Origin: Thalia democratica
Taxonomy: Eukaryota
DNA length: 64,000 bases
Assembly (NCBI GenBank): GCA_965202585.1
Contig: OZ241829.1
Span: 5,022,001-5,086,000 of the forward strand
Direction of reading: 5' to 3'
Position 1 is the stretch's first letter, and every line of letters begins with the position of its first letter. Shown one piece after another: positions 11,001 through 62,740 of this stretch. A program made the position numbers and the translations under genes. Below the pieces are notes generated by a model. It was not told the origin of the DNA. It ran no database searches and saw only the letters and a list, made by a program, of their open reading frames with translations.

Positions 11001-11991
11001 TTTATTAAAGAAAAACATAATTAAAAATAAGTAAGTTCTTACATAACTTAAAGCTGTTGTTTTGTCTCTTGCAAACAGAAATCAAACTAAAACAACTGCA
11101 CGAAAGCAAAAAGTTCGAAACAAATCAGCGGAGAAAATAAATAGTAATAACATGATTACGAAAATAACAGAAAACTTGAAACAACAAAAACAGCCGAGTA
11201 GCTGAAAGTTTCAAAACACAAACACAGGTGGTAGCTATTTATATAAAAGGTTAAAATAATATTTTGAAATGTTTAAAACGCGTCTGCGCAAAAAGTCTCT
11301 CCCTCTCAAGTGGGGGGAACGGAAGTAGTAGAGGCTCCACAAACAACCCCTCTACAAGCGGAAATCACTCAGGCGTGACGCGACAACCCCGCAGTGTGCC
11401 AACTGGGCTTCTTGTCAGCTCTAATGAGCCACCAGCAGATGATACGGTTGACTGATCACAGCTACTTCAGTAGTGGGTGGCCTGTTGATTTCCGAATCTT
11501 TTGTCTTATTATACATGCCCCCATTGCGAGTTTTTCCGAGAAATTGTTTAAAGATCGTTTGTTGGTTTTGATGTTGAGGTAAAACTTTATGCTTGAATGA
11601 ATTAAGATAGGTTTGTGTTTATAAACCAAAAAAAAAGGTTTTAAGCGCATTAGAAAGGTACGGAAATAAAAATCTAGCAATAAACAGTTTACTCAAAGTT
11701 TACAGAGAAAATTAAATATAAAACAACTGAACTAAACAAAAAAATACTCAATATTTAAAAAGAAAAAATATTTATTTTAAAAAATTCAATTTTCTTATCA
11801 TTTCGTTAGGTTTAAATTTCTAAAAAAAAATAAGTTTTTAAAATATATAAGACAAGAAACACACAGATTAAAAATGTTTTAGACCCTAGCTCAACGTAAC
11901 CATCGAAAAGTCCACCCTATGGAAGCCTCACGTATAAAAGAGCCCCTGCTCAAAAGCGTGTAAATAATTTTACACGACTCTGCGTCGCCAC

Positions 11992-12446
11992 CTAGTAGCC
12001 ACCTTGTTGCGAGTGCATGACGGGATTGAACGATGGACACGCCTTCTGGTTGAATTTGTTCGCAGCAGCCACCTTCAACGCCTTGTTCTTTTTCGTCCAC
12101 TTGTATATCTCGGTGACAAGCAACCTCGATCCCCTCGAGTCCTTTCTACCCATGATCAGGTAAGTATACCTTTTCTTCTTTCTTCTCTTCTTATCCTTCT
12201 TCTTTTTCTTACTTGAAGCTCCTCGGGGGATCCTCTTCTTGTTTTTCTTCTTCTTCGACCACGAAGCATCGCCTATGAGCAACGAGCACTTGCACCCCTT
12301 GCCCGATATGATCAGCCTCATCCTGCGCAGATCCCTCGCATCCAGAGGTCCCTTCTTGTAGACGATCCTCCGCCTCGGCGATGCCGTCAGTTCCCTGATG
12401 CCCATCTCCGGGTTGAACGTCAGCTTCTTGCTTCTTACTTTGACCA
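11992..12446 (-). CDS. SFRP1/2/5: sFRP-A exon 3 (NTR domain with polybasic insertion)
   Basis: ORF 11992..12447; TTCACAG acceptor. Confidence 0.93.
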
Positions 12447-15400
12447 CTGTGAAGAAAAATGTTTGAATAAATTAATTTATATATAACCTTAAATCTAATG
12501 AAGAGTTATACACATTAAGAACTTAATTTGTAGTTTAAGTTTCAGAGCATTACTAAGTCCAAGTTCGGGTGTAATTTTAGTTGTTTTAGACCAAGTTTCT
12601 TAAAGTGAACATATAACAATCTCTTGGTGCAATTTTAGAATTCAGGTAGCTATAAGCACTAAGATAACGATAACTAAATGAGTAATTACTTAGCAAAAGA
12701 GCGATATCTAGTAAAAAGTGCTTCGTTTTATTTTAATTTATACTAAGTAAATAATAATGAAAAATAGTCTGGGAAACCTTGGCTTAAAATTATCAAAAAA
12801 AATTGTACATGGACACAGTACTTATGAAAATATACTATAGAAGTTTAAAAATCTATATAGAACCAAAATTCATTCTTTGTACTAAGATTCTGCAATACTT
12901 GTCCTAAAAATTAAGATACTTTAAATAATTTAAATAATTGACTATTTTAAAAGCTGGAAACTAGGTGTCGGTCTTAAAAATGAAATTAAAGTTAGTTGAT
13001 TCTTAGTATAAAATATTTGAGCTTGTATCAACTAATCCACTTTCTAGACTATTATAATTTGAAACAATTCTTAAAGTTATTTGATAAAAAAAAGTAAGCT
13101 ACAAGGGTTGTTTAAAGAGACAATTTTAAACTATGTCTAAATGTTTACAAAAGGAAATACAACAATAAATAATAATATTACATTCATGACTATTCAATAA
13201 AACGCTAATAAGAAACCATTTTGACACGATTTTCTATTTTCAGCAAAAATTCTAACCACCAACTAATTTGCAGTTTTATAGTTTTTAGAAATGCAACGTA
13301 ACTTAGCTCATAAATTAAAATAAAACTATTAATTATAATCGATATATAATAGTAATTAAAGTATTTTATTTAGGCTAAAACTATACTTTAAAAAGTAGTT
13401 TTTAATGTTGTATTTTTGACAGTCTTTTACTGATATTTGAACCTTTTTTTTAAGATGTAGTTGCAAAAGAAAGTTTAATGTATAGATGTAAAATGCTTTG
13501 AAATAGTATTTCCAAAATTAATTTGTAAAGGAAAACTTATTTTCCAATATTTTTAATCTATTACAGTAATAAAAACTTAAGTTTACTCTAAATTAAAACC
13601 AGATTGTTTGTGGCCTATTTAGTTTAGTTTTGTTACAACCAAAATCATATTTTAAAGACAGCACCTGTGTCAGCATATTTTTTCTATAAATACATAACAT
13701 TTTTAATTAATAAAAAGTTTAATTTATTTAGAAGTAACAGTTCGGCTGTATATATAGTATATGTAGAACATAAGTTTTACTGCTGATTAGTTGCAATAAA
13801 AATAAAATTTAGGTAGCTTAAAAGCTTTTTTTTTCAACTAATTTCGTGGTTTAAATTATAATCTTGAATTAAGTGCAAGCTAACTAAACAAACATTGTAA
13901 ATACAAGTCGTCTTGTTTGTTTGGTAATAACGCGATAAAATTTGCATGTTAAACTTGTTTTGCTTTAATGTTTTCATAAGAAAACTTCATTGTGCTAATT
14001 TTTGTTTACTTAAAGCGTTATTAGATACGTTCAAAAAGTGCTTATCACAGTAATTAAAAAATTGTGTTAGTAGAACAGTGTAAAGTACAAAAAAAATAAC
14101 TGTAAAATAAATGTTTTCATACTTAATGAAAGCATAGTAAATAGTTATCAATATATTTTTAACAACAAAACTATGTTTATTGAAATTCGTGTTTCTTCGA
14201 ACTTTCTACTTTTAAAATTTAATCATCAGTTTTTGTGTACTTTTTATTTTTACCAACACTACAGATACACAGTAGCGATATTGCAATCAATTTTCTTTGC
14301 TTAAAATTGTTACTAGTAAGTTTTACTTAAATCAGATTTAGTTTGATCACAAGGTTTTGACAGGCGTATAATCAAATCAATACCCAAGGTATACAAGCGA
14401 AACAATCTTGTATAAAACAAAAGAAGTTTACATTTTGAGCGTGACCGGTTTAATCAAGATAACTCTTCAAACATCTTCATTATTCACTGTTTATCAGGTA
14501 TCTTATCTACCTTCTCATATAAAAACTCTCTACTTGCTATTAAAATATATTCAAACAGTCATCTCTTTATTCTCGAAATTTGTTGCATACTTTTGTTAAT
14601 TATATATATTTTTATCTTTATTTGTTAGGTGTCTGGAAGATTATATTAGTGTTTTTGGATACTATTCTTTTCATTGTGTGGTTGTATTTTTAAAGACATC
14701 TTTATTAAAAAAGTCTGGTATTTATGTTTGAATAAATAGTTGCGTAAAATAACTGAAATATTTATTTGTCTAAAAGTTAGAAGTTTTTCACAGTCGCTGA
14801 CTTAAAATTCGTTAAGAAGAAAGTTTAAAAAACTTTTTATTTTTCTGAAGTGTATAGTTTTTATTTTAGCATTTTGTGGGTTAGAAAGTATATACCACAA
14901 TAAAGGTTTATCATAGAACTTTAGAGTAGATTGAGACTAAAATAAGTGTGAAAATTTGTCATGAGTTTTATTTTATATATTGCTTATATAAATTAACTAA
15001 TTTAGTTTTTTGTGGAAGTCTTTGAACACATTGATTATGAAAACACAGTAGAAATAAAAAAAATATAACTAACCGAATTCAGAGGCACAGAAGTTGTCGT
15101 TTAGGGTTTCCACCTTAACTTTACCCATCGTTCTACAGGGTGCACACACACCAGCTGAAATAATAACAATTCTTTAGTTGATGTACTAGTTAATTGTTAA
15201 AAAATATTTTCAAAAATATACAAATATTCTATTTTTTATATAGAATATAAAATAAAAGTGGTATAAAGCAAGAAAAAGTACTTTAAAGAAACCATAACGT
15301 AAAACCTTAACTTAAAAAAAAAGTACTTTAAGTAAAATTGAAATTTTTAGACGTTATTCTTTTGATTGAAAATTATTATTTTAAAATTCCAGAGACAATA

Positions 15401-17695
15401 TTTATTTTTGACACAAACTTCAAGTGGGGAAAAAATGTTTATGTTTTTGTTTGTATTAAGTGTTTTTAAAGTGCTTAGTCGTTGTTTATTTCCATTATTA
15501 AAAGTTCTAATTTGTCATAAGACGAATATAAAATAATGGTTATAATCTTACGTTTTGGGAACGAGTCAAATATGCAGTAAGTGACACTTTTGCACGAAGG
15601 GTCATTTTTGCACGAGATTTAATATATAAAAAAACTTTTTTTTTAAATCAAGAAAAAAAAAAAACAACAAATGAATTAATGAAAATAAATAAAATGAAAA
15701 ACAAGTTACCAATTGAGAATAAAGGTCAGGGGTAATAGTAATAGTAAAAACATAAGTAAAAAATAGCTAAAATATATTATAAAAAAAAACAAAACAATAT
15801 AAAATATTAAAATAAATTAATTAAGTTTATATACTTTCAAGTTGATAATAATGTTAATTTTTAATTATTTATTGAACTAATAATGACGACATAAAGTTTA
15901 AAGTTCCAAAGTTCAGCTCTAATTAACAAGCAAAATAAATTTCAGTTAAACAAATCGTAAAATATCTAAAAACTCATTTACCAAACAGCCTGATTTTACT
16001 TGATGTTTTGATTTACGTTTTACAGTGTTTACTAAGGGCTAAAAACATTAAGAAAAAATGCGAGGTCGTAAACGTTTCAGAATGTTTACTTGAATGTTGT
16101 GAAACCAGTCTGTGGAGGAATTGTAACAAAAAGTAGATTGTATTTGGAAAGTAAACACGAAATGAGCAAACATGATCATCTGTCCGGTATATACAAGAGA
16201 GCTTATTTTAAGAGGTTTTGTTCAAGTAACAAATATTGCTGCTGACAAATGTGCTTAGCGTATATTATTCTTCTTAATTTTTGGACAGCTTAATCATAAT
16301 TTAGTCAAAGCGGCTTGTAACATCTTGTAGTGTCTTGTCGCATGCTGGTTCATTCTGATGCATCATTTACAGCGAGACTGGTAGATATTTATGTTTTTTA
16401 ATCTCAATAATTATGAAATAAACTTTATAAAGTTTGTAGCAAAGTTACTTAGGCTAAGGTGTATGAGATTAAAATGATCAAAAAAAATTGTTAGAACATT
16501 TTTAAAAGTTTAAGTTTTATTGATTGTATTTGTTTGTTAGCTTTTTTGTACATTGAAAATTTTTTTATTGCTTTTTTAAGACAATACCTAATATGTTTGA
16601 AGTAAATATTTTATAGTAATTTAATCATCAACTAGTAAACCAAAACTTTAAGTAACTTTTGAAAAAATTAAAGTAAAATTTTATGAAATAAAACAAGTAA
16701 AAGAATTTTATGAATTAATAAAATTTGGTTCATTCCTTTGTAGTCTTTGTTTTCAACTTATATTTCAAGTGTTCTGAATAACTTACTGATTGAATTTTTA
16801 TAAAGCAAGTAATTTCTTTTGTATAAAATAAGTATTCATTTATTCCTTGTAAGCATAAAAACCCTAAATTTCATAAACAAGGAAACTTAAACGGAGACAA
16901 AAAAAAACATCCAGTTGGGTAATCATTTTTAAAGAAGAACATTATCAATAGATATCATTTTTGAATCGTAAAAAAGGATAAACGAAGATTATAACAGTGT
17001 ATATGTGCGTATAACAAACAATAGAACGTTATTACAACACATGGCTCCTTGTGACATAACTGTTTCACCTGTCTTTGAAATTAAACATTTTTCTAGTAGG
17101 CGTATTAACAGAGACAAAATCTAAAAGGTACACATTTAAGTTGATAATAAAATAAACGTAATAGATGTATACATAACTAACGCATGGAGGTTTGTGTTGG
17201 TGGGGAGGTCGGGACTTGTGAGACGGTGTTGTTCAGGTTCACGCATGGCTGCTCATCCGTGAACTGGCTGCAGTTGAGCATGGACGGCCAATCGAACTGG
17301 TACTCCCTGAGGACGGGGGCGCACGACCGTTCCACGTCACTGCACAGCTGCTTGCACGGCGGGATGGCGCCCACCACTTGCTGCAGGCACACCGGAGCGA
17401 AGAGGGAGCAGAGGAAGATGCGGGCGTGGGAGTGGCAGCCCTGGCGGAGGAGGGGAACGAAGGAAGCGGCCTGCTGCTTCACCTCGACCAGCGTTTCGTG
17501 GCGGAGGAGGTTGGGGAGGACCATGTCGGAGTAGCCGACTCCGTGGCACAGCTTCAGGTCGTTGGGAATGCGCACGCAGGTGAAGTGGCTGCCCCCTTGA
17601 GAGTGGAACTTGCTGCCCACATAGCTCCCACTAGTGGTGGTTGTCATGGTGATGGCGACCAGCAAAAGAGAAAGTAGCTCGGTTTTGTCGCGCAT
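11992..17695 (-). CDS. SFRP1/2/5: Secreted frizzled-related protein copy A (sFRP1/2/5 subfamily), 349 aa; exons 17695-17182, 15154-15074, 12446-11992
   Basis: Signal peptide and a 10-Cys Frizzled CRD (LPNLLRHETLVEVKQQA, FLCSLFAPVC). Exon 2 encodes VCAPC...FCASEF; exon 3 encodes the NTR (KKGPL, GCKC, YLIMGRK, YKWTKKNK, ACPSF). Phase-1 GT-AG introns, 1050 nt open frame. Confidence 0.95.
15074..15154 (-). CDS. SFRP1/2/5: sFRP-A exon 2 (PGVCAPCRTMGKVKVETLNDNFCASEF)
   Basis: 81 nt, TTTCAG acceptor and GTTAGT donor; not in the ORF track. Confidence 0.92.
15570..15850. repeat. Possible interspersed-repeat fragment in sFRP-A intron 1 (copy at about 49347-49620 in C), not seen in B
   Basis: TTTTGCACGA direct repeat at 15588 and 15606 followed by A-rich tracts; boundaries are approximate. 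Confidence 0.3.
17182..17695 (-). CDS. SFRP1/2/5: sFRP-A coding exon 1 (signal peptide + CRD)
   Basis: ORF 17177..17695; donor GTTAGT at 17181; acceptor TTTCAG at 17720-17718. Confidence 0.95.
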
Positions 17696-18452
17696 TACTT
17701 AGATTGTTTAGATAAATCTGAAAATTAAAAGTACAGTATTGTCTAGATAATTATAATCTTATTTAACAGTTCTTCTTGGTTTAAATTTAATATATTGTAT
17801 TATCAGACTCTTTGAATTTTGATAGTATAACTCATAATGCTAACTAAAAACTGAAAATCAATTAGTTTATTTGTCTAGTTGTTTACAAAATACAAAGTTA
17901 TTTATGTTTATTAAAATTCTATGTTTTTCTTTTACAAATGTAGTAGTAGTGTGGATGAGCAGTTTAGTTAAGGTTTATAAAAGTCAGTTTATACAAAAAC
18001 CTTATTAACTAATAAATTGTACAATACTTTTTAACATTTTTTTATATAGGCATTTGCTTTAAAAATTTAAATATGACAAAATTGAATACTATAGATTAAG
18101 GTTTTTTATACTAAAGTTTTGACAAAACATATTTCAAACCAAATGTTCTGCAGTACTTTTAATTTTTAACTAACGTACTAAAAAAAAATAGTTTTCTCTG
18201 AGAAATAAGCTTACAAGCTCAACTGGCGAGCTTTGCACAAAGCAAGATAAGCTGCTTATCATTAAACGCTGCTTCAAATAACAACAATTTGAAAAAAAAC
18301 ATAACAATAAACATAGCTGTTTCGTTACTAGAAACAAAACCAATACAAGTATTAAAAGGTTTATATGGCACAAAACTAAAATATTTTAGTCTTAAACAAA
18401 CAAATTAGCTAGCTTGTTAATTTAAAGAAACATTAATTAAATATTTTGTAAC

Positions 18453-18615
18453 TTGAAGCTTGCTTGTTGCTTATCAACGATTAATGAATCAAACAACCAC
18501 TAAGCTTCTTGTTTTACTTGCAAGTTGAGAAAAAGGTAATATTGGCCACTACGAGGCGTAAGAGGGTTCCAAGGCTGATGTTTTCTCGATTGATTATCGC
18601 ACTGCTTAAGTTTAA
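18453..18615 (-). promoter_or_regulatory. Conserved proximal element / likely sFRP promoter (copies 35497-35659, 51930-52092)
   Basis: Retained in the diverged C flank; conserved ATATTGGCCACT (CCAAT on the minus strand) about 0.8 kb upstream of the exon 1 acceptor. Confidence 0.55.
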
Positions 18616-19386
18616 GCGATTTTAAAGTTTTTTGTAGGCAAGTTATTATGGTTCGCAGTCATTAGTAACACGTTTTAAAAACTTTAATAAAAAAAAATTA
18701 AAAAATAACAGTTGAACTTTTAAATGCTTGTTTTTGTGATTTTATACTTTCTAACACTAATTACTTTATGCTTAAGCAAGCTTTTTAGGTTAAAAGACAA
18801 CAAAGACAATGTATAAAATTAAAAAAAAAAACAGTTTTATGGTTTTAGGTTTAAAAAAACAAACTAAAAAATGTCGTTTAAGATAAATAATACTTCAAAT
18901 TTAACTAAGCTAAGATAAAAAAGTTTTTTACATGTCAAAAAAAGTACATGTTAAAAAACAGTTTGTGTTGTAAAATAAATATAACTAAAAAAAAAGCTGC
19001 ATTTTATACTTATTAGAAATTTTATTTGTATTTTAATACAAAACCATCTTTTGTTAAAAAAACGAACAAACAAAACAAAAAGTCGTGAATCTTATTTCTA
19101 AACATATGCTTTAACATTACTTTTTATTTAGTATATATTTGAATTTTATCAGAATAAGTCAAAATTTGTTTATCTCAAAATGAAAGCGATAAAAATAAAA
19201 AAAAAAACAAATTAAATTATTTGAAATGTAGAACTTTTACCTACTGTTACAACTAAACATTTTCTTTTTTATTAATAACACCACTAATAAAACAAAAATC
19301 TCAATTTTTTTATTAGTTATTAGTGCATTAGATAGTACTTCATAAAGTGATTTAATGTTTTAATTTATATGAAAGTCAGTATACTA

Positions 19387-19531
19387 GTGTTAATGTTTAG
19401 TAGATTAATTTGCTGCAACCTTTTAATATATGAGAAGACATAAAAGTTTAATCTGCTTTTTATTGAATTACCGCCGACACACTTGTGAATAATCACAGAG
19501 CTTTACATAAATGTGTAACACGTTCGTATGG
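19387..19531. promoter_or_regulatory. Conserved non-coding element (copies 36426-36570, 52706-52850)
   Basis: TAGTAGATTAATTTGCT and AAGTTTAATCTGCTTTTTATT are conserved (GATTA/TAATC K50-homeodomain-type cores). Confidence 0.5.
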
Positions 19532-22300
19532 TCTTACTAATAGTTAAATTAAGTGGTCATGAAATCTAAAATTTTATAAAGTTTATATACAAAATATAAT
19601 AAAAATACAGAAATTAAGTATATTTTATAAATAATTTTTAAACTTTAAGTTAACTGTATTTTAGTATGATTTTCATAATAAATTAAACCATTTATATATA
19701 TACATGTACGTATAAATTACTAATAAAAACAACTAGAGTTGTATTATACACATATGTAAAAGTTAAATTATGAATCTTAATTTTTAATTAGACTTTTCTT
19801 ACAAATATCTGAAAACAGGAAAATGTTCATTTTGAAAATTTTACGAGTTCAATGTTTGTCTTAAATTTTATAGTGCTAATTAAAACTGTATGTTATAAAC
19901 GTTAATTATGTTCTAAATGTTAGCTTTACATTAAACAAATTTTTTCGTAAAATTGTAAATAGAATGTTTTTATTGAAACCTGTTGAAATATTTATCTAAG
20001 GTTATCGATCTCACTACGATTAAAAGATAAGCTGTACACATTGATAAAATTTATCTGTATTATCTAATATCCAGCTTTAAACTCCCTACAGCTACTTTTT
20101 AAAACATTGTTTTCGTACATAAGATATGGCAAGGTGTTTTAAAACTGTTATTTACATTGATTTATAAGTAAACTTGTCATCAAAATATTTTTTACTATCA
20201 GCTTTTAATAAAAGTTTTGCTTTTTAATAAAACATTGATTTTATGGTAAACTTTACTTAATTTTAACTGTGTACTTGTAAATTTAATCAAATGTTTGTGC
20301 TCATGTTCGATAAATTTTAGTTTATTCAAATCTTAAACAAAATAATATTACAAAACTGCATTTTTAAATAAACATTTTACCTAAACCTAGTTATGGTCTT
20401 TTTTATTATGTTCCAAACCAAAAAATAAAAGAGCTTATTTTCAGACTAATTGGATAATTAATAAAGACTTTACTAATACACGACATAACATTTGGATTAT
20501 TTGCAGGAGTGTGTTACTTTGATCTAATTGATGTAATAATGACACCGTTGTGAAAATAGTAACTAAATTGCTCGGGATGAAAATAAATCTTCCAATATCT
20601 TAGAATTTATTTCTAATTGCAGAGTATTAAGTGGTCTGCATTTAGATATTAATATATATTAGATTTTGCTGGCTGGCTAATCTAAAATATAAAACTTTGT
20701 TTTGTAGTTTTATTTCTTTCTACATTTATCTAAATAATCATACGTTAGTATTTAAGCAAAGTTTTAGTTTATAACAACAGTATACACTAATTATTACAGC
20801 GTTTAGCACATTTAAACAAATGTTTATTAGTTAATACTTGAAATTAACAAGCATGTTACAAATTTAAAGCAAATGTGTTGTGGTAAAATCGCTTTCATAA
20901 GATTTAGTTACTATATATTGCGAAATATAAAATAAAAACCAAACTTATTTCAACAAATTAATTTCATATTGGCTATTTAAATACTAATTAATGATCGAAT
21001 TGCGGTAAAAACTTTAAGTTTTGTCAGAAAAACATTTGCATCATAAAACTTGCAAAAGTCATTTAATAACTGAATAAACCTAAATTTACTGCAAATCAGC
21101 TGATAAAGTGTCGAATACAATCAGATTTGTAATCATATTGTATTAGTAACATGAACATAAGTATCTTGTGAAATATGTGGCATGAAATTTTACTAGATAT
21201 TTTTCACAAGGTTGCCACTGAAATTAATTTTTTGGGTTGATATTAATATCATGTTCTACGAAAAGTCGATTTAATCATTTATCTGTTCGTCTTGTAAGTG
21301 TATGTTTGATAAAAAATAGTTAGAGTTTCAAATAACATTAAAAACTATGCATTTATGATGAAAACTAATTGTTAAATTTTTGTATTTTGTTTTAATTTTT
21401 AGTGTAATTTGATGTTAATATCATTAATGCTGTTTAAAGATACTTAAGAATGACAAAATCTTTTTCATAAATATTAAGAAGTTGCGACAATTTAGATAAA
21501 ACTAAATTGTTTACTGTCAGTTGTTTATATCATTTGTATAGATGGTTTTAATTTAAGTTTTTGAGAAAGTTAAAAAGTAGTCTTTTTAGATAACTTTAAC
21601 ATTAACTTTTATCATTTGAAAAATGGAAAACAAAAACAAACATACTGGAAGGAAAATAAGTTTGACTACTAAGACTTGTTATTGCCAAATATAGCTTTGA
21701 CGAACGTCTCAATTTATGAGTAATTTTAATTTTAGTTTTTGCCTAATGTCAATATTAATCATATTAAACTTAAACTATAAAAAATATTTAGTTTCAAACT
21801 AAACATTTATCTTCTTACTTTGACAATTGAAATGATTTTTTTGAAACATGATAAATGGTAATTACCTATTAACTATTCTAATGATCAAAAAATTGATTAT
21901 ATAGAAATATCAGAAGATCACAAGTTAAGACAAACGACAAACACAGAAAAACTCTTTATTTTAGCTCTTACCTAGTATTTAGTAGTTAATTACACATAAG
22001 TTATAACACTAGCTACAAGTTGCCTGTTTCATCTAAAAAACTGATGATTATGAGTTAACTAAATTTAGGAGGTACAATTTGAACATTTGTGAAAACTTTT
22101 GAAAATTAACTGCAACATTTTGCTAAAATATGTTTCCTTTATAAAAAATATCAATAAGATTTTATAAACAATAGAAAAGTCTAATAAATTATTTTTTCAC
22201 ATTTAAGAAAGCAAATTAAACTAAAATTCAAATAAAACTAAATTTGGAGAGTTCACTTAGATTTGGCGTTAAAATCACAAATATCTGAAAATTATCAAAG

Positions 22301-22510
22301 GTTGGCATATCAACAAGTTTCGGTTGCTAGGGCTGTTTGTCTTCATTAATAACACCTCTTACAGTTGAATGGCTTCTATCAGCACTTGGCCATCGACTTC
22401 TTCTCAGAGGGAGTCGTTGCTAGGTAACCGATTAATTATCAGGGTTCAAACCCCGGTCATGTGTACATAGGTAAATTGTTCGAACAAACGAGGAATTAGG
22501 GTTTAAGCAA
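22301..22510. promoter_or_regulatory. Conserved non-coding element (copies 39341-39550, 55770-55980)
   Basis: An approximately 85-nt core (22396-22481) is nearly invariant in the diverged C copy. Confidence 0.6.
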
Positions 22511-23357
22511 AATAAGTTGCTCTTGATTGATTTCTTGGCAGTAAATTGATATTTTGGTTGCCTTTTATTAATCTGGAGAAATCGTCTTTAAGCTCAAATT
22601 AAAATAAATAAATTTTTAGTTTGATTTTAATTTTTGTCGAGTGATAAAAAAGAAGTCACTGTAGGGTGAAATTTATAATTAAAAAAATTAAAAATCTGTT
22701 GTTCTTAATTTACTTGTTGATCGTCATAATTACAAAATTACAACAGGTTCTACAAAATTTAAACTTGAATGAGTACACTTTCAACGAAACTAGTTTTAAA
22801 TTTTGTATTGTTTAATATCTTCTGTGTTGCACACGTGTATTTAAGTGGATTACGTATTTACCCAAAATTTTACCTTTTGCGTCTATATTCAAAGTAAAAC
22901 CAACAAGTTTTAAACTGTGCCAACACAAGAAAAACTGACATCAAAACTTGTACCCGCATGTAATATGTGTGTGGGTAAATTTAACTTTTCAAGTGGCTTT
23001 AAACAACAAAATACGTCACAATTAACGTTAAGTAGAATTAGTAGCCTTTTTATTTGCACAGCTTTCACTAAGAAGTAAGTAAAAGGCAATAGGAATGCCT
23101 TAAAGTAGCCTAATGAGCTATTAAGAAATACAAAAACCAATTGAAAAAAAATAAGTGTGACATTTTTGTTCCATTTACAGTGAATAACGAAACTTGAAAT
23201 AATGAATAATAGCATAATTTAGAAAACTAAAATTTGTTTTGTAACGGACAAATGCTTTGTAAGGCTTTAAACTTTGTCATAGTTCTAAAAGTAAAAACAA
23301 AACAAATTTTAAAGTATTAACACGAGAAAATTTTCGCAAATATTTATTTTTATAGAA

Positions 23358-23535
23358 ATTGTAAGCAACCTAAAGTTCAATAAACTCTAGCTACCGATCG
23401 TTATTTTTTAAGTTTCTATTGTGACGAAATGATTAATGTTGTTGACAAAATTTGTGACGTCATAATATAGCGATCGTCGCGTGACCATTCTGCTGATCAC
23501 GTAGCAAAATCACCTGCAGACAGACACCAGATTTT
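23358..23535. promoter_or_regulatory. Conserved non-coding element with TGACGTCA and CACCTG (copies 40397-40574, 56788-56971)
   Basis: A 35-nt block (23501-23535) is identical at 56937-56971; TGACGTCA, CTATTGT and CACCTG are conserved. Confidence 0.6.
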
Positions 23536-24894: not shown

Positions 24895-25070
24895 ATTAAT
24901 TAAACAATCGGCAGTAAACTTAGCAGCAAATTACTACGTTTCTCAATAAGGAAGTAATAAAAAAATAGCAAATTCGAACGGATTAAATTACTTGAACGAT
25001 CTTTTTAATCGAACTGTAAAAGGTAAATTACAGCTTAATTTTTACTGCAGATAAGCTGTGTTAATTTGCA
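24895..25070. promoter_or_regulatory. Conserved non-coding element (copies about 41935-42110, 58745-58910)
   Basis: ACTACGTTT..ATAAGGAAGT and GCAAATTCGAACGGATTAA are conserved. Confidence 0.45.
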
Positions 25071-27274: not shown

Positions 27275-27335
27275 AAGTTAAGTTCTTTGACGCCATTTGC
27301 TAAACAATATCCGAATTGTCAAATTTGCAAACCGC
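27275..27335. promoter_or_regulatory. Short distal conserved element (copies 44278-44338, 62675-62738)
   Basis: AAGTTAAGTT(C/T)TTTGACGCCATTTGCTAAACAA-ATCCGAAT is conserved. Confidence 0.45.
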
Positions 27336-31393: not shown

Positions 31394-31459
<66 letters not shown>

Positions 31460-31861: not shown

Positions 31862-31897
<36 letters not shown>

Positions 31898-51462: not shown

Positions 51463-51497
51463 TACTTATATTGTTTATATTAATCTGGAAAACTAAA

Positions 51498-54400
51498 ATT
51501 TAATCAAAAAAGTTAAATAAGTTTTGATCGTTTCAGAATTTTATGTTGTACAACTTCTATAAAATTTAACTGTTTTTGCTGCTTTAATTTATAAAAATCA
51601 AATTCATCATTTTATTACTGAAACATTTTAGCTAATAAGCAATACAAAGATACATTACTTTTAATTCGGTTGTCTCTTGAGAAATAAAAGACTTGAGTGC
51701 CAAACCAAATTGACAGACAAGGTTTTTACTGTTGTAAAAATAAGATTAGCTACTTATTATAACACACTGCTTAAAATAGAAGCTACTCGGTCAAACATAA
51801 CATTTACAGTACTAATTTTTTAAAACATATATAACTAATAGAGTAGTTTTGAATTTTTGTGTGAAACCATACTTAAAATTGAATACTGACTAGTAAATAT
51901 GAGAAAAGCAGTGTTTAAGTTATAGTAATTTGAAGCTCACTTGTCGCTTATCAACGATTAATGAATTAAACAAGCACTAAGCTTCTTATTTTAGTTGCAA
52001 CTTGAGAAAAAGACAATATTGGCCACTATGAGGCGTAAAAGAGTTCCAAGGCTGAGATTTTCTCGATTGAATGTCGCACTGCTTAAGTTTAACTGATTTT
52101 AAAGTTTTGTACAAACTTTTTTTGTTTATAATTGTAATTTTTAGACGTTATTCAATTGCTATAAATATTAATTTAAATGTTTTTCAAGTTTTAAACTATT
52201 TTTTTGTTTACAAATGCTTTTAACGTTCTAGTTTTTAAGTTTAAACAATTTTATTAGACATAGTCCTAAAAAAATATGTATAAACAAACTAGATGTTCAA
52301 ACATTATAGGTAGTATATAAGCTAAAGCTTATAAACTTTCTAAAGTTTTACATTGATGGTTAAAGAAATTTACTATTATCTTAGAAACTTAATTATCTTT
52401 CTAGTTTTAAACAAGTTCATCAACTTTATTTTGAAAAAAGACCAAGCAAAAATTTTAAAAATCTGTTTTCTTTATTTTAAAAAGTTTTTATAATTTTTTT
52501 AACATATAAAAAAAATCCGGAAATGAAGCTAAATGTGTATTAAAAATACTTTCACTTATTTTTGCAACTAAACATATTCCTTCAATTAATAACATCAACA
52601 CTAATACAACTTTTCCATGCTTGTAACTTATTATTAGCGTATTAGATAACACTTCTAAAAGTGATTCAATGTTGTAATATAGATGAAAGTTATGTCAATG
52701 TAGTGGTGTTAATATTTAGTAGATTAATTTGCTATGACCTTTTAATATATTAGCAGACATACAAGTTTAATCTGCTTTTTATTCAATTACTGCCGATATA
52801 CTTGCGAATATCAACAGCTTTGTAAATAAGTATGTGACACGTTTGTATGGTGTCCAATTTAAATCATTATCTTTTAATAGTTTAGGTAAAATTTTCACAA
52901 CTGAGATTTGTTTACAGATAAATTTGAGTTAAAATGGAGTATTAGTTTGAATAAACTTTGGCGCATGTTAAAACTTTTAATGTCACGTAATCTGTATAAG
53001 TGTATCTAACTTTAATCTTTTTCCATGATGAAAATGTTAAAGAGTTGGACTTAAGTGTTTATTACACTTAAAAAACACTGATAAGCATTAAGTTTTAATT
53101 TTTACTAATTTGAAAACAAAAAACAAGATAGTATGAAGATGTGAAAAAGATAAGTAAATTAAAATTAAGAACTGTTAAAACATTTATGAAAAATGTTTTA
53201 TTTCTCAAAAAAAAACATATGATTAATGTTGATAAGTTTTATCTCTACTATCTATTACCTAACAAAAAAACTCCTTACAAACGTTTTTTATTTTAATGTT
53301 TGTTATGTACGTATTAGATAAAGCTGTTATGCAGGTAGAATTGTGTTTAAATTATAAGTACGTTACTAAACAATTTTACTCTTGCTAACAGGCTTAAAAA
53401 TAAAAATCATTAATTTAATCTTTCCAATAATAAAACGTTTTCCGAGAAAAAAAACCACACTCTTGTTTTGGTTTATACCTTTAGCCGTTTTTGTTTAAAG
53501 ATTTCACTAACAAATACACACAAATCAAGATTTCCAGACTAATTGGAGAATTAATGTCAGATTTCACTAATCTCCGACGTGAAAGTTAGCTCACAACACA
53601 GAAGTATGATACTTTGATCTAACTGATTGCGATTAGTTTGTACTAATTTTGCAATAAATATAGTAACTAAGTTGCACAGGACAAAAATAAATTTTCCAAT
53701 GTGGTTTATGTTGAATTTATTGCTGTTTGGAGGGAGCTTCAAGCCTGCAATCAGATTTTAAATAAAAAGTATATTTAATGTGTTTGTTTTATCATAAACA
53801 TACTATATGTACAATAGTTTTCAATTTTATTATTTTCATTTTTCATACTTGTTTTAAACCAGCATATATTTAGATCTAAATTAAAATTTAGATTTTAATT
53901 AAGTGTGCATAAGTTTTATAATGATTAACAAATGTACATAAAATCAACATATTTAATAACTAAAAGATACACAAACATCACAAAATTTTATGTGTACAAA
54001 GTTTTATCAGTATACTGTATTAACTTTATGTGATTAAAGCTGAAACACAAACCAAACTTATTTCAAACAATCAATCTTCTTTGCACGTTCAAACTCTAAT
54101 TAATGATTAAACGCCGGTTCAAGTTTTGAAATAAAAGGATGCAGAACAACAAGTTTGCAGAAGTTTTATTAAAAACGTGAACAAACATGAACTTGCTGCA
54201 AATCAGCAGAAATTCTGTCAAAAAAAAGCAGATTGATTACTATTTCCGTTTAACTTGCATTATTAGCATGTGAAACTTGTTTCATGAAAATTTAGCGATT
54301 TTTCTTTTGCTTTGGCGCTTAAAGCTGTTGAAGTAAACACAACATGATGTTGAAAATCTTATCAAGCTGTATTTTCAAGTTTATATTGTTAGATTTATTT

Positions 54401-57400
54401 TTTAGTTTATAGCGTCTGAAATGGTATGTTTAAAACAAAATTAACAATAAAATAAGTTATAAGTTTTAAAGGTAATTTGTTGAACTTTGTTCTTGTAAAT
54501 TATTCAAATATGTAAACATATTTATGAAAAGTTCAAAAAATTCTGATTCAATTTTAAAAACAATAAAACTGTAATACTTAAGCTTCAAAACAAGAAAATA
54601 TTGTAACAAAAAGTATATATTTTGTTTGATAACTTTTTTTATTTGTTTAAAGAAATTACTAAAATGTAAGAAAAATCAAGAATACTAATAAAAAAACAAA
54701 TTTAAACAAAAATTACCATGTAATAAATGGTATAAGCTCCTAACTTAAATTCAATTTACGTTTATGTTTTTACGTCATGATAGTTTTTGTAATAATAAAT
54801 TTTATTATCAAAAACATTTGGTAAAAATGTCTTCATACATTGTATTTTTTGACAGATGAAATGCAAATTTTATATCATGATATGTGTTAATTACCATCAA
54901 GATTTGTAATAACTTAAATACTGAGCTTGTAGTAATAGTAAGTTGCTATAAGAAAAGTTAAAACACAAAAAACAGTGAAATTTATCGACCTTAAACTTTA
55001 CCTTGCTTCAAATTTCAGAAAATATATAACAATAACTTCAGCAACAATTATTTTTTAATTATGCGCACATTTAACAGTTTACTAAAACAGCAACTTAACA
55101 AAAAGATAAGAATTAAACGTTTATGGTGTGTACTTTACAAATACTGCAAAAAGAAACAAAGTTCTCTGTGTATAAAAATTTAAACTGCTTATATTTTGCT
55201 ACTTTTAAGCTACTTATATATGTTCTTACAGTTTAAATAATGTACTTAAATTTTATCTTTGATATTAAAGTGGTTTGATAAAAAAATTGTTTTTACTAAA
55301 CATAATTTTAGCAAAACACGCGTAGTTTACCATTTGTTTTAAAATTTCGTTAATCAAATAATTAATAAAGATTATAATATAGAAGACAATATATACTACC
55401 GAAATAAGCTGGTTGTTGTTTTTTCTACCTCTTTTTTCATACTAAAGTTTAAATAATGGTAAACTTTAAAAAAATAATTTTGTTTAACTTATCATAAATA
55501 CTAGTTGTAGAAACAATAATACTTTATAATGGAAACAACTAGTTTTAAACACTTAACAAATGATATTTAGCATTTTTTAAGAATTATTTTTTTTTAAACA
55601 CTCACTTATGCATAATAATAAACGATGAAATACCTTACAAACTTAACTCTTACTCACTTTTAAATTTACTACCAAAATAAAAAAGTAACCTCAAGTATTA
55701 TTAAAACAAAAAAAAATAGATTTCACTGCAGGTTGGCTTTAAAATTAAAAATATCTAAAAATCAGAGATGGTTGGCATAACAACAAGTTTGGGTTTCTAG
55801 GGTCGTTCGTCTTCATCAAATGCCCCTTTTATTTGCTGACTGGCTTTTATCACCACTTGGATATCAACTTCTTCTCAGAGGGGAGTCGTTGCTAAGTAAC
55901 CGATTAATTATCTGGGTTCAAACCCCGGTCATGTGTACACAGGTAAATTGTTCAAATAAACGAGGAACTGGGTTTAAACAAAATTAATTGCCTTCTAATT
56001 GATTTTTTGGCTTCAAACGGATGTTTTGATTGTCCGCTTTTACTAAATCAAAGCTATAAAAAGCTTCTTTAAATTTACAAAATTGAAATAAAAATAAAGT
56101 ATAGTGTTTATGGCTTGTAACTAACTTTTAGAAATATATTTAACAATAAACTTAAACTTATAAAAAATTTTAATAAACTTAAACTAAATTTTATTTAAAT
56201 AGAAGCATTTATGTTAAAAAAAAGCTTAATTAATGAAGTTAATTAAAAAACAAAATTAAAAACTCAGTTTTAGCTAAAATCTAAACAATAAGTCATTCTC
56301 CACGCCTATATATAAGTAAATTATGTACTGTTACCCAAAGGATTACCATTTTCTTCTATGTTTAAAGCGAAATCCAAACAGCTTTAAGCTGTGCTAAAAC
56401 AAGTAAAATCAACATAAAAACTATTACCTAAATCTAATGTACAACGTGGTTCATTTTACTTTTCAAGTGACTTTCAAGAACTTACGTCACAATTAACAGC
56501 TAACAACTTGGTAGAACTAGCAGCAGTTTTATTGCACAGTGCTAACAATGAAAAAAATAAAATAAAAAGATGTCTAAAGTTGCCTATTGAGCTGAAAAGA
56601 AATAGCAAAAAAAAGGTGTGATATTTTTGTTTAGTTTACAGTGAATAAGACAACTTAAAATTATAAAGATTCTTTTGTAAGGGACAAATGAAATGTAAGA
56701 TGGTGAACTTTGCCGTGAATCTAAAAATAAAAATAAACAAGTAATCTTAACACTTGTAACATTAAGCAAATGTTTGTTTTTCTCGTAATTGTAAGCAGCC
56801 TAAAGTTCAATAAACTGCTACCGATCGTAATTTTTCAATTTTCTATTGTGACGAAATGATTAATGTTATCGACAAAAGTTTTTGAAATTGTGACGTCATA
56901 GTATAAATAATGTCGCGTGACCATTCTACCGATCGTGTAGCAAAATCACCTGCAGACAGACACCAGATTTTGTTTATTTATTTATTACAACATGTCTCAC
57001 AAATTTATTAGACCGAGCTTGTGTTCTTTTACTTGCTTATTCCATGCTTATTTTAAAAGAATGTATTTTGTCTTGCTATGCCCGCAAATGTACAGCTGCT
57101 AACAGCTAATATTTCTTTAAAAAGTCTTTAAATTGGATTTATTTTTCCTTCTTACGCTATATTTTTATTAAATTCCATATTTTAAGTTTTGTTTAAAGTA
57201 TATTTTTGGTATTAATAATATTTACTTGCTGGCTAGACACCTACACAATATGTATACAATTGGTTTGTTACATTTTAATTTGTCTCATTACTAAGAAAAA
57301 ATAAGATTTTAATAAAGGCGGTAAAAAAGTCTTTGGTTTATTTCATACTAAAAACAGTCAAGTATTTTAATTAAAAGAAAACAGTTTAAACTATAACATA

Positions 57401-60400
57401 TTCTTATTTTCAATACTAATATCAAATATTAATTTAAAAACAACAGTATACTTAGACTGTATCATTTCAACTTTAGAATTGTAACCAAAATATTTAAAAA
57501 AATTTGCCAACTGAAACTTTTTTTAAACTTTTAACCTGTAGATTTTGCTTAACTCTAAGCATTAAATGTTGTTTAACTTTGGACAAATCACTAGTTTAAG
57601 ATATTCTGAATATTTCTTTTATATTAAATAAATTAAAATAAAAAGCACACAGCTAAAAATTTTTCCAACAACAGTTTTTCCCGCGGGACATACTTAAATT
57701 ATGAAATAAAGGAAACTTAATATGTTTGTTTACATTTATGTAATGACACCAGCTCAATATATACAGTTTTTAATAATGTTTTTTATACATGCGTACATTG
57801 TTGATACAAGCAGTTCCTAACGCACGCAATTAGCTCCATGTACTTTAGAAATAAAACGTTTTCGTACACAACACTATTTACCGGCAATTAGTTCCAAATA
57901 CGTAAAGGTACAAAGCTACGCAGTTCCAATGCAATTTCGACAAACAATACTTGTTACAAATTAATCGCAGTAGACATGTTCTGCGTAAAAAAACATGCTT
58001 ACGTAATTTCTTATTTATTTCCTGTATGTGATTGAAGAAAAAAACTAGATTGGAAATTAAATAATAACAAAGGTTTTAGTTTTTTATCTTATTGGGGAGA
58101 CATTCATCATCTTCATTGGATGGACAGGTAGCAACTATTGTCTGCTAATGTGACGATTGAAGTTGTCAGCTGTGATCACGAGGTGTGCAGGTGTTATGAC
58201 GTCACAACAAGGCAAGCTATGAATAGTTGCATCAGGTTTATTATTTTGTTGTAAGTTTCATGATCAATAGTTAAATTTTGCTGAGCTTTCTTGCAAGTTT
58301 TCTGCGTACATTTTGTGATGGGGCTTTTGATTTTCAGCAAAGAACTTTCGTAAAAGATACACATGATTTTAAAAACAAACGTATTTTTTATTAATTTTCG
58401 TTTTATTATTGATAATTAATTAAGAACACGATGATTGTTTACAAAACTTTAAGTATTTTTTCTTTTAAGTAAGGATTGTTTTTTTGCAATTTCAAACAAT
58501 TTTAAATTAATTTATTAATGAAATTTGCAAACAAATCACTTTTTTTGAATTTTTAAAATAAAAATATTTTCATAAAGTTATTCTGCTTTAATTTAAGTGT
58601 TTTTTTATTATAAGCATAATAATTACTTTTAAAGTTTGTTTTGACGAAGTAAAATTACCGTATATATAAAAACTTAATTAACAAAAACTGTGGGAAAATT
58701 TACAAAAAAGCTAAATTAGATTGGCAATTCTTGTAGTTTAATTAGATTAATTAAACATTCAGCTGTAAATTCAGTAGAAAAGTTTACTACGTTTTGCGAT
58801 AAGGAAGTCATTAAAAAACTTGCAAATTCGAACGGATTAAGTTTTAAAACAAATTTTATTGTTGAACTGTAAAAATCGAATTACAGCTAAACTTTTTGTG
58901 CAGATAGTTTGTGTATTTTGCATATTGTTTTTAAAATCAGATAATTTTCATTAGTTTGTGGATTAGTTTTACAAGCAGTAAATTACATCGACGAACGAGT
59001 AAATAGCAGAGTAAATAAGAAGTAAACAAAATATTTCCGTTTGAGAAAAGTTGTGGAAAAAATAAAAGCTGAAATTTTAGGTTTTTTGTACTAATTTTTT
59101 TACCGGACGAAAACAATTTATTAAAATAAAAACTTAACTTTTGTTTAAATTTCCAAGCTTACTCATTAATAAGAAAATAATAAGTATGTATTTATAATAA
59201 GTGAAAAATAGATTTCTGTTTTAATCTTTGATGGAATGAAAATAATGTTTCGAGTAAAGCTATTTACATAAAAAAATATTTTTGATATTAAAAATAAACA
59301 AAAGTGTCTCCATCTGTTAAAATATAACTTTTACAATAGTTTGCATAGCCTATCAAGTCTGTAAATTAAAGTAATAATAGATCAATATGTTCAAATAATA
59401 TTTTCAGCAAAACAAGGTAATCAATATTCCAATTTTTTTTCACATTTTATTCAGTAAACATTTTAAATCAATATACATTAATGTATTGCATTTAATGACA
59501 CAATAGCTTCAAACATATGCTTCTAAAATAGTGTTGAGTTAAATTATAGTTTAGTATAGAATTTATACTGTTACCAAAATAAAATTACTTTCATTCACCA
59601 ATCAGTCACTCGATACTTATAACTTCTGCCAAACCGGACTGCTTTTTAATTTTAGTTACGCGCCGTTTACATCTAATTTACTTGAACAGCATTTTCAGTT
59701 TTTTGGATGTAAAATAAAATTAGATTTAAATTAAGTTTCAAATCTTAAAGTTCTTTTCTATACAAATATACATTTCTAGTATCGATTTCTTATTTCTTGT
59801 TATGTTTTAAAATGCGTTGAATTTATTTTTAAATTGTTTTTTTTATCTTACTTTTAATTATCTTTTATAATATTTAAGTTTCCTTCAAGCAAGTTAGTAA
59901 ATTAAGCTGCTAAATGCTTTTCTAACTTTGCATTCCAGATATTTTTTTTTATAATTTATTGTTTATTAACGTAAATAAACCAAAAAAATTAAAAGCAAAA
60001 AACCATTTGTACTAATAAGAATAAAAATATTCATTAGCTTTAAACTAGTGACTAATAAAAAGTTGTGTTATTTTAAGTATATTACTACATGAGAACTCAA
60101 ACGACAATAATCACGCTGGAATGGCATAAAATAAACAAGACATTTATTAAAAGAAAACATGAAAATTTATAAAATAAACAAGCTATTTATTATAAGAAAA
60201 TAATCACACCTTTTTCGCGGACTTGAATGTTTACATTAGAACATTCAAGTATTGTTGAATTGTGTGACTTGTGTATATTAGCTTGTATGATTGATTGTTT
60301 TCAATTAACTGTAAATTTAAAGTGATTTATCATGTACTTAACACATTTTTCTTGAAAATTATTAAGATTGAAAATAAACAGATGATTTAGTATAAAAAAA

Positions 60401-62740
60401 AATCAGTTTTGTGTAACAGTTTAATGCAGTGACTAATGAAAACAATTGTTATTTTAAGAATGTATAACGTTTAAAAAAAAGTAAGTTGTCAATTGAATCA
60501 CAAAATTAACAATAAATTCATTTAAGGAAATAATTAAGTCTTTTTCTCGGACTTAAATGTTTATGTTAGATTATACAGCATTGCTAAATTATTTGACTTG
60601 GGTATATTCGGTTATGTGATTAAAAAATTTTAATTAACTGTAAATTTAAAGTGATAAACTACGTACTACTAGTTTTTTTGTAAACTTAATACTGCTAAAA
60701 AATAATTTCAAGTATAATTTTACCTTTTGAATTTAATGAAAAATTTCAATTGCAGACTAATATAACAATAAATTTATGTCTTCTGCTAAGTTAGACAATA
60801 TAATTTTTGCAAGTATTTTAGTATGTTTTTCAATTTTAAGGTTAGATAATTTTTTAACTTGAATGTTGTACCTACTGTTACTAATTTACTAGATTGTATA
60901 CTTTTGTTATTTAAATACTATATAAACAGAATATACGAAATGTTTATCATAAAAAATATAAAACACTTATTTTTTACAAAAGTTTAGGAAAAACTAATAT
61001 AGAAAAGTTGAATTTATAATTTCACCAACTTGCGGAAAAAATGTTTTACAATGAATTTGTTTTCAATTTATTCTCAAATTAATATGCATTATTACGTGAA
61101 CAAGTATTTTATTTTCTAAACTCTTTTCATATGTTTACTTAGTTTTATTATTTAAATACCATACACTCTTTAATACTAAATAAATATTTAAATGTCTATT
61201 CACCAGCTGCTTATGAAACTAACTTAAAAAATCAAACAAAGATAAACAACAATCAGGTATTAGTTTAAAAACCAATGATTTTTAACATCACCTAAATAAA
61301 ATTATTTAACATAATTTTCTTTTTGTCTTTGTTGTTTCCTAAAAGTTAGCTATTAATTTTTCATTTTTTATAGTTCAAAACATATAGTAGAGTTTTTACC
61401 AAAAATGTTTTAGTTGCATATAGTTCTTAATATTTATGAAGACAAATTTTTTTCGAACAAATTTGAAAATAAAGCAGATTTTTTTATAATTTACGGTCAT
61501 TTAATTAAAGTGAAAATTGCAGAGTAAAACAAAAGCACTTTTAAAAGAAGCTTAGTTAATGTTTGAAAATGTTAATATCCGTTTGCAGTTCTATTAAATT
61601 TTACTTTGATTAAACAATTAACATTTGTAAGGTATGTTATAAGGTTACTTCTTTAATTGTAATTTATAAAGTACTTTTTATAAACATTTGGCACAGAAAA
61701 AAGTTCTTTTTTGTGAACTAAATTTATTTAAAACAAACCATTAACTCTTTTCGTACATTTTTTATTAAAAATTTCCTTATATGAAAAATAGATGTAATAC
61801 AAGATTAATCAAGTTATACAGACTAATTAATCAAGCCTTTTTAAGATTAAATGAGTTCTTAAAATTTAAATTAAAACCGGCTTAAGCTGTAAAATGATTT
61901 ATATGCAGTATAATTGAATTCATTATTAAAAAGTCTTTCTTTAATTTAATAATATAGTTCATAAGCTGATAAAACATAATTTTGATTAAAGAAAGTAAGT
62001 AAATGTAGATATTAAAATACAGTTATTTTAGTTTTTTAACTTTATTAATTAGTATACAAATGCTTCTTCACTTATAAACAGTTTTCTATATTTATAATAT
62101 TTCGTTTAATTTGTCAAATAGTAAAATATAGGTTTTTAAATTTATTTTTATTTTTAAAATATTTTTAAGTTAAGACATAAGAAACAAGTTCTGTAGTTAG
62201 TTTACAAAATTTTAATTTCATTTATGTTATAAATGGTTTATTGTTAAAAGTTTATACAGTTTTTCTGTTAGAACTTTTATTTTAAAATAAAACTTGAAAA
62301 AGTACTCAGTTTTCAAGTGAATTTAAATTTATAAAATGTTATAGCGCTTGCTATTTTTAAATAAAGTGAAAGTCTACATTGATAATATTTATAAATATAT
62401 TAGCAAGATGTTTTTTTCAAAACTAATTGTTTAACTATAAGTTTATGTTTTAATAAAAAACTGTTGTTAAGTATATGTTAAAAATAGGATTACTCAAATG
62501 CTTAAATATTTTCTGTTCACAAAAAGCAATAAAAAGATTTTCTTATACAAAAACGTGTTTTAACAACTTCGGCAATTTTTAAAGTAGTTTCATGATAATT
62601 TTTTGCAAGAATTATAAATTGCATCACAAATGTTTATTTGGCAAAGTTTATACTTTCAAGTGCTCGTTTAAAACAAGTTAAGTTTTTTGACGCCATTTGC
62701 TAAACAACATCCGAATCAATTGTCAAGTTTTAAACCGCTA
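51498..62740. repeat. Old diverged paralog of the sFRP upstream region (17730-27340 / 34775-44340), recognisable as colinear conserved blocks
   Basis: At least eight blocks in the same order and orientation as in the A/B upstream regions. Confidence 0.9.

Follow-up and report, generated by a model that had tools for sequence, protein, structure and literature searches.

Unequal exchange between tandem gene copies is known to produce hybrid genes and changes in copy number, as in the red/green opsin genes, the alpha-globin genes and the Lepore-type globin fusions. The mammalian gene pairs BMP8A/B, DDX19A/B and TUBG1/2 show a mosaic form of concerted evolution with sharp and stable boundaries (PMC2720389), while an opinion article holds that intron divergence restricts recombination between recently duplicated copies and stabilizes them (PMC9220161). 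Here we describe an array of three tandem genes of the sFRP1/2/5 type in a stretch of 64,000 nucleotides from Thalia democratica (assembly GCA_965202585.1, OZ241829.1:5,022,001-5,086,000). This stretch is referred to as the window, and all coordinates below are window positions. Our reading of the locus, which we consider likely to be right, is that of a real tandem array with two old non-coding lineages, whose exons have been kept alike by gene conversion and which has undergone at least two exchanges resolved within exons.

Mosaic structure of the array

The three genes, here called A, B and C, are all intact and lie on the minus strand with a spacing of about 17 kb, each with three exons and GT-AG introns. 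Their blocks were compared by employing self-BLAST, gene-by-gene BLAST, a three-way MAFFT alignment of the units of about 17 kb, and counts of informative sites. BLAST identities count gaps, and divergence percentages refer to substitutions only. Along the window, the order of blocks was found to be alpha introns (gene A), upstream block U1a, beta introns (gene B), upstream block U1b, alpha introns (gene C) and upstream block U2. In the self-BLAST, positions 11974-17730 matched 45799-51498 at 92.9% identity, and 17114-29288 matched 34150-46286 at 97.3%. The latter block, at about 98% identity when only substitutions are counted, extends from exon 1 of one gene across the intergenic DNA into the last exon of its neighbor. 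Between the bodies of A and C, substitutions amount to 5.34% (303 of 5670 sites, with values of 0-10% per 250 nucleotides), and between U1a and U1b to 1.96% (236 of 12056 sites, 0.4-6.4% per 500 nucleotides). Against this, the introns of B (29289-34149) could be aligned with those of A and C in patches of 70-80% identity only, with mismatches at 33% or more of the ungapped aligned sites, and U2 (51498 to about 62753) showed only collinear patches with U1, at 57-77%.

The informative sites gave the same picture. Within the introns, 1104 of these sites separate B from the other two genes and 162 are of the other two kinds, while in the upstream blocks 3184 separate the block of C and 138 group otherwise. 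In the last exon, A is set apart from B and C by 13 out of 18 sites, and in exon 1 it is C that is separated, by six out of nine. Affinities thus change at the exons, as had been claimed in an earlier, sequence-only reading of the window. The block pattern proposed there was reproduced by the self-BLAST, the three-way alignment and the informative sites alike, and its description of the U1 copies as about 98% alike, and of the B introns and U2 as only patchily alignable, agrees with the values above. Its figure of about 90% identity between the introns of A and C fits the least constrained windows and is slightly low as an average.

High identity stops at well-defined places, i.e. 7 nucleotides beyond the exon 1 donor (17175/34218), 22 nucleotides before the exon 3 acceptor (29288/46286), and 13 nucleotides upstream of an acceptor-like AG (17730/51498). 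Similarly, the resemblance of B to A and C drops 7 nucleotides past every donor and 12-22 nucleotides before every acceptor. The sequence-only reading had placed the switches within about 20 nucleotides of the exon edges. This is where identity ends, but the exchanges themselves may sit elsewhere in exon 1, as this exon has no informative site over 365 nucleotides and the exchanges in B and C could lie anywhere therein. The one exception is the exon 3 switch in C, which can be narrowed to positions 12440-12453 of the A copy.

Two lineages of non-coding DNA can be recognized from these affinities. The alpha lineage includes the introns of A and C together with the upstream blocks of A and B, while to the beta lineage B contributes its introns and C its upstream block. 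In every gene the upstream DNA has the higher coordinates. Gene A accordingly combines an alpha body with an alpha upstream block (the parental type), B a beta body with an alpha upstream block, and C an alpha body with a beta upstream block. By these pairings, B and C are reciprocal chimeras, each combining alpha and beta parts; a parental beta gene, with both beta body and beta upstream block, is absent from the genome. The long separate history of beta is seen also in intron 2 of B, where an interspersed repeat of about 430 nucleotides (29400-29830) is accompanied, 2 kb away, by a decayed partial second copy (31449-31640), both of which are absent from A and C. This repeat has thousands of candidate copies in the genome, with 75-89% identity among the matches listed, often as inverted neighboring pairs. 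The B introns also contain AT/TA microsatellites at 31387-31458 and 31847-31894.

Homogenization of the exons

The exons of all three genes are homogenized, a point missed in the sequence-only reading. Synonymous divergence (dS) is 0.067 between A and B, 0.067 between A and C, and 0.035 between B and C, with nonsynonymous divergence (dN) at 0.004-0.006. These dS values are far under the divergence of the adjoining B introns, and the B exons are as close to A as the C exons are, despite the diverged introns that surround them. The exons of B hence have a recent ancestry that is not shared by its introns, which argues for gene conversion limited to the exons. In addition, the A-C pair provides an internal control, as its dS matches the divergence of its introns (5.3% on average and 8-10% in the freest windows). 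Low dS is therefore not explained by codon bias, synonymous sites being approximately neutral. Most conspicuously, codons 53-171 of exon 1 (357 nucleotides) are without a single difference among the three genes. From the dS of A and C, about 5.7 synonymous differences would be expected over this length, and by our calculation the chance of observing none is about 0.003. The apparent switches at the exon edges arise because the exons are homogenized relative to the B introns.

One non-coding segment shares this pattern. Intron 2 of each gene contains an AT-rich island of about 320 nucleotides, whose three copies are 92-100% alike and are found at 14439-14760 in A, at about 31897-32219 in B and at about 48217-48538 in C. 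It contains no open reading frame and has no Rfam match. In the B copy, its low-coordinate edge (about 31896) adjoins a (TA)24 microsatellite. The island is probably a conserved regulatory element that has joined in the same homogenization, and may be an enhancer within the intron whose likeness was maintained by selection, conversion or both.

Two further points were considered for the homogenized exons. The GC-richness of these exons does not serve as evidence of biased gene conversion, as the GC content at third codon positions (GC3) is 0.76 in the sFRP coding sequences and equally high, 0.72-0.75, in the exons of the neighboring single-copy gene. Homogenization templated by RNA or cDNA is unlikely, given that the AT-rich intronic island has been homogenized as well and that A shares no 3' untranslated sequence with B and C from 18 nucleotides past the stop.

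Proposed history of the array

The present arrangement could have come about as follows. An old duplication would have given an alpha gene and a beta gene, whose non-coding DNA then diverged until little of it was alignable, while repeated gene conversion kept the exons and the single intronic island alike. Since conversion spreads only across DNA that is still similar, it would have halted at the exon edges. The exons would thereby have become the sole long homologies left between alpha and beta, and unequal homologous exchanges would have been resolved within them. The present order of blocks would have taken two or more of these exchanges, whose endpoints would lie in the first exons of B and C and in the last exon of C. 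As a result, essentially one protein would be encoded by three genes that differ in how upstream block and introns are paired.

An enumeration of single crossovers supports the minimum of two. Starting from an alpha-beta ancestor, a crossover in exon 1 gives the bodies alpha-beta-beta and one in the last exon alpha-alpha-beta, while a crossover in exon 1 of a B-C ancestor gives beta-alpha-alpha. None of the enumerated events yields the bodies alpha-beta-alpha together with the upstream blocks alpha-alpha-beta, and at least two exchanges are therefore needed. The earlier statement that a single tandem duplication is insufficient is borne out by the same enumeration, the observed order not being among the single-event outcomes.

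Several equally short routes lead to the observed order. In one of them, a crossover in exon 1 is followed by recombination in the last exon between its duplication and deletion products. In another, a diverged alpha allele replaces the third gene body after the exon 1 crossover, and in yet another an old three-unit array is overlaid by long conversions. A variant in which the third body was converted by A itself after the exon 1 crossover is contradicted by the data, as the A-C divergence (5.3%) is older than that of U1a and U1b (2.0%). We also considered U2 as the donor of the more diverged U1 patch at 20100-20700, and found no excess of U2-like bases on either copy. The divergence is patchy within both the A-C and the U1a-U1b pair, with similar maxima, so that ages derived from mean identity are unreliable. 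The order and the kind of the events (crossover, long-tract conversion or exchange with a diverged allele) are not recoverable from one haplotype.

Contigs from other samples

Sequence of the window was detected in three organism runs as well as in metagenomes of marine origin. For comparison with the reference, we used Logan contigs of 300-900 nucleotides from four runs, i.e. the three organism runs and one marine metagenome, where runs X11 and X12 represent one sample. The depth of these contigs is not readable as copy number. A-type and C-type bases coexist in the alpha introns of all four runs, and the sites 13842 and 13858, only 16 nucleotides apart, distinguish three or more local sequence types in one sample. 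Summed contig depth over the alpha introns was about 1.5-2-fold above that of the flank, which, depth not being copy number, is a weak hint.

In the last exon, five listed sites between 12118 and 12391 were compared in the four runs. The bases of the reference A copy were absent at all of these, and the contigs that cover them carry the bases of the C copy. At 12148, 12226, 12268 and 12391 these bases are shared by B and C, and at 12118 the base is a G private to C, where both A and B have an A. The A-type bases of the last exon are consequently private to the reference or rare outside it.

Run X13 (organism B) stands somewhat apart: of the words sampled from the C gene stretch, it holds a fraction of 0.29, compared to 0.72-0.75 in the organism A runs. 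Over the A gene and the flank, the similarity of its contigs is about the same as for organism A. The C-type body may be different or missing in X13, which would be a possible difference in copy number or haplotype.

The contigs give a hint that a sample may hold three or more alpha-type sequences, in addition to the private reference bases in the last exon of A. More speculatively, and with the odds in our view against it, exon-anchored exchange may routinely re-pair the promoters, introns and bodies of tandem developmental genes throughout this genome, in which case two-gene and three-gene sFRP haplotypes with differing regulatory combinations would segregate in wild populations.

Alternative explanations

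A number of observations weigh against a real tandem array shaped by exon conversion and exon-resolved exchanges. No Logan contig bridges an exon and both of its flanks, and the three critical junctions (beta intron/exon 1/U1b, U1b/exon 3/alpha intron, and alpha intron/exon 1/U2) are thus seen in the assembly only. U1a and U1b differ by 2%, which falls within the allelic range of the single-copy flank, where alleles from the X11/X12 sample are 1.2% and 3.9% from the reference. Moreover, A and C have diverged more than U1a and U1b, and the simplest ordered history then needs either a diverged allele as donor or a later homogenization of U1. Finally, no orthologous locus was found by which the paralogues could be shown to exceed orthologues in likeness. 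A scan of JGI metagenomes with exon 1 gave no independent contigs of the locus, and exact look-ups of the three exon 1 products came back blank. The best outside match to exon 1 had 71% identity, on a contig of 806 nucleotides, and the one contig from a distant relative, with a single Fz gene in the 10 kb to each side, is too remote for use as an orthologue.

One rival explanation is an assembly artifact, in which each chromosome would have two genes and non-allelic exons of diverged haplotypes would have been joined, either once, at exon 1 of B, or in three joins that thread A/C and U1a/U1b as alleles. The allelic size of the U1a-U1b difference speaks for this, as does the finding of no alternative haplotig of the locus in the assembly. 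Such a join must, however, cross at most 495 nucleotides of exact identity, or about 620 nucleotides at 97-99%, which is far under the overlaps needed by long-read assemblers. Stretches of exact identity reach 495 and 434 nucleotides between U1a and U1b and 365 nucleotides between A and C, none of which is long enough to mislead an assembler. The window is also gap-free and lies inside a chromosome-scale piece, and a head-to-tail haplotype repeat would have put a beta body in third place rather than an alpha body. In addition, the three or more local types of alpha intron in one sample are too many for two alleles of a single copy, provided that the sample is one diploid animal. We consequently regard an artifact as very unlikely. 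Somewhat less improbable, but still unlikely, is a history of conversion only, without any crossover, in which three units are of long standing, a tract of 12 kb homogenized U1a and U1b, and earlier tracts homogenized A and C across B. The patchy divergence of both pairs, with near-zero stretches and similar peaks (6.4% for U1a/U1b and 10% for A/C), would be expected from this, but tracts of 5-12 kb are required. Conversion tracts of this length are much longer than usual. One of them would also have acted between non-adjacent units 34 kb apart while skipping B, the ending of tracts exactly at the exons that border beta DNA is left without explanation, and the more diverged patch in U1 shows no sign of a U2 donor.

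As a parsimonious explanation of the array, the sequence-only reading had proposed that two different haplotypes, each with two genes, underwent an unequal crossover in exon 1. This is a special case of the history proposed here, and one that we hold to be possible though doubtful. It takes as parents one haplotype with an alpha body/alpha upstream gene and a beta body gene with any upstream block, and another with a gene of any body under an alpha upstream block and an alpha body/beta upstream gene. It does reproduce the order seen in the window, placing the join within exon 1 of B; it allows A-C and U1a-U1b to differ in age as allelic coalescences; and high allelic divergence is present in the species. 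Its second parent, however, already holds the chimeric C, with its alpha body and beta upstream block, and an earlier exon-anchored exchange is thus required all the same. The data show no preference for it over the other routes, a two-gene haplotype was not observed, and the scenario is therefore not uniquely parsimonious. Least credible of all is the view that the genes are simply old paralogues, with exon identity due to purifying selection and codon bias alone. The high GC3 of both the sFRP genes and the neighboring single-copy gene does indicate that codon usage is biased genome-wide. The agreement between A-C dS and intron divergence nevertheless means that synonymous sites are not strongly held, the A-B dS of 0.067 stands against mismatches at a third or more of the intron sites, and the 357 identical coding nucleotides in three copies are not to be expected by chance.

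Gene structures, protein products and neighboring sequences

The window has a GC content of 27% and contains no N, and the array is situated about 5 Mb into a chromosome-scale piece of at least 78 Mb. No other sFRP copies were found in the 802-Mb assembly, the sole extra match being a distant Fz-domain match on another piece.

Exon boundaries were derived from open reading frames and a splice model, and coding ends include the stop codon. The coding exons of gene A, all on the minus strand like those of B and C, are 17695-17182, 15154-15074 and 12446-11992. Its exon 1 (17182-17717, coding 17182-17695) encodes the putative signal peptide and the Fz cysteine-rich domain, and has a leader of 22 nucleotides preceded by an AG at 17718-17719. 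Intron 1 (15155-17181) is of the alpha type according to the alignment and the informative sites, and exon 2 (15074-15154, 81 nucleotides) has one private difference per copy. Intron 2 (12447-15073), also of the alpha type, shows 2-10% substitutions compared to intron 2 of C, while about one third of the aligned sites mismatch in B. Exon 3 occupies 11977-12446, of which 11992-12446 is coding. The array ends on the left at 11974-11977, 15-18 nucleotides beyond the stop codon of A, where homology with B and C ends. From 18 nucleotides past the stop, A has an untranslated region and 3' flank of its own, with no relation to those of B and C (11900-11994 compared to 28720-28817 and 45722-45819). 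No old collinear homology was found between the 3' flank of A and the DNA before the last exons of B and C, the single match being one small repeat. Given these distinct 3' tails, transcripts of A should be separable from those of B and C.

Gene B has its coding exons at 34738-34225, 32616-32536 and 29266-28815. The beta-type introns, at 29267-34224, enclose exon 2 (32536-32616), and are bordered by exon 3 (28800-29266, coding 28815-29266) and exon 1 (34225-34760, coding 34225-34738). In gene C, the coding exons are 51462-50949, 48930-48850 and 46265-45817. The alpha-type introns (46266-50948) enclose exon 2 at 48850-48930. Exon 3 of C (45799-46265, coding 45817-46265) is B-like until 14 nucleotides from the acceptor, and exon 1 (50949-51484, coding 50949-51462) has six C-private sites, all within its 5' 190 nucleotides. 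Intron 1 of A and C contains a short repeat based on an 18-nucleotide unit (15500-15900 and 49357-49393), with about two copies in C. Contigs with this repeat reach a summed depth of more than 140,000, with hundreds of loose ends, in every run, which makes it a very abundant genome-wide family.

Of the non-coding blocks, U1a (17731-28799, alpha type) lies upstream of A and downstream of B, U1b (34775-45798), the second copy of this alpha-type upstream block, lies upstream of B and downstream of C, and U2 (51499-62753) is the beta-type upstream block of C, sharing collinear patches with U1. The final collinear patch (62609-62753, corresponding to 27210-27350 in U1a) marks the right edge of the array at about 62753, close to the end given in the sequence-only reading. 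The last 1.45 kb of U1a (27351-28799) is without a counterpart in U2. U1a contains no open reading frame of at least 70 amino acids with a family signal, and in the upstream blocks as a whole neither a noteworthy open reading frame nor a match to an Rfam family was found.

The reading frames are intact and encode products of 349 (A), 348 (B) and 347 (C) amino acids. The hydrophobic N-terminus was read by eye as a putative signal peptide. An Fz domain (Pfam PF01392, E=2.8e-27) was identified in exon 1 at residues 43-148, and ten cysteines were counted in the translation. Exon 2 encodes the start of the putative NTR domain and carries a C-x-x-C motif. When exon 3 was scanned alone, the NTR domain (Pfam PF01759) scored 21.8-21.9 bits, compared to a cut-off of 21.9, which is the score of gene A. 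The reading frame stops after the NTR part with no further exon required, giving a product without the seven-pass membrane domain. Among named proteins, the closest relatives are sFRP1 of fish (41-51% identity) and sFRP2-like proteins of tetrapods (53-56%). An acceptor-like AG is present 22 nucleotides before the ATG in all three genes, and each of these probably has either an upstream non-coding exon or a trans-spliced leader. All three products have a lysine/arginine-rich insertion in the NTR part (12169-12255 in A), and B has one additional glycine, at codon 278.

The neighboring gene, at 175-6146 on the plus strand, has nebulin-repeat exons and a C-terminal SH3 exon, and appears LASP/nebulette-like by eye. 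Its exons keep their GC3 of 0.72-0.75 amid DNA of 25% GC, and high coding GC3 thus is a trait of this genome.

Comparison with known systems

sFRPs modulate Wnt signaling and help to pattern embryos. In a literature search, we found no paper on tandem arrays of sFRP genes in tunicates. The array constitutes a natural experiment in which the regulatory context rather than the protein has been reshuffled, with a possible rise in dosage. A new pairing of gene bodies with upstream enhancers and a changed dosage of a Wnt modulator, as suggested in the sequence-only reading, would be logical consequences of such exchanges. The array also shows how homogenized exons can serve as anchors for recombination in an otherwise diverged tandem array, and in the A-C pair it has a rare internal control by which exon identity can be attributed to conversion and not to codon constraint.

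As in the mammalian pairs BMP8A/B, DDX19A/B and TUBG1/2, near-identical segments kept by conversion lie beside diverging ones with sharp boundaries between them (PMC2720389). The homogenized parts of the sFRP genes differ in being the three coding exons and one intronic island of 320 nucleotides, and the GC mark used for the mammalian pairs is uninformative here, the neighboring single-copy gene having the same GC3. The diverged sFRP introns do fragment homology and restrict exchanges to the exons, in line with the proposed role of intron divergence in stabilizing duplicates (PMC9220161), but the exon-sized homologies that are left have evidently still been enough for exchanges that change both order and copy number.

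False haplotypic duplications are similar to this locus in that adjacent copies, here U1a and U1b, differ by an allelic-size 2%. The order of blocks in the sFRP array is, however, not head-to-tail, and a mis-join would be limited to 495 nucleotides or less of exact identity. The opsin and globin arrays offer a parallel to the exchanges themselves, as misaligned tandem paralogues exchange, the promoter of one is joined to the body of another, and copy number shifts. Unlike these, the sFRP array holds both reciprocal chimeras plus one parental type. A single crossover puts reciprocal chimeras on different chromosomes, and at least one further exchange is thereby implied. The sFRP proteins are furthermore nearly the same, so that the reshuffling is limited to the non-coding context.

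Taken as a whole, this is a clear case of the known reshuffling of tandem gene copies and involves no new mechanism. Its value lies in this clarity, and in the flag it raises for checks of annotation and assembly in a highly polymorphic genome. What sets it apart from the systems above is the presence of both reciprocal promoter/body chimeras in one array, together with an internal control for neutral synonymous change.

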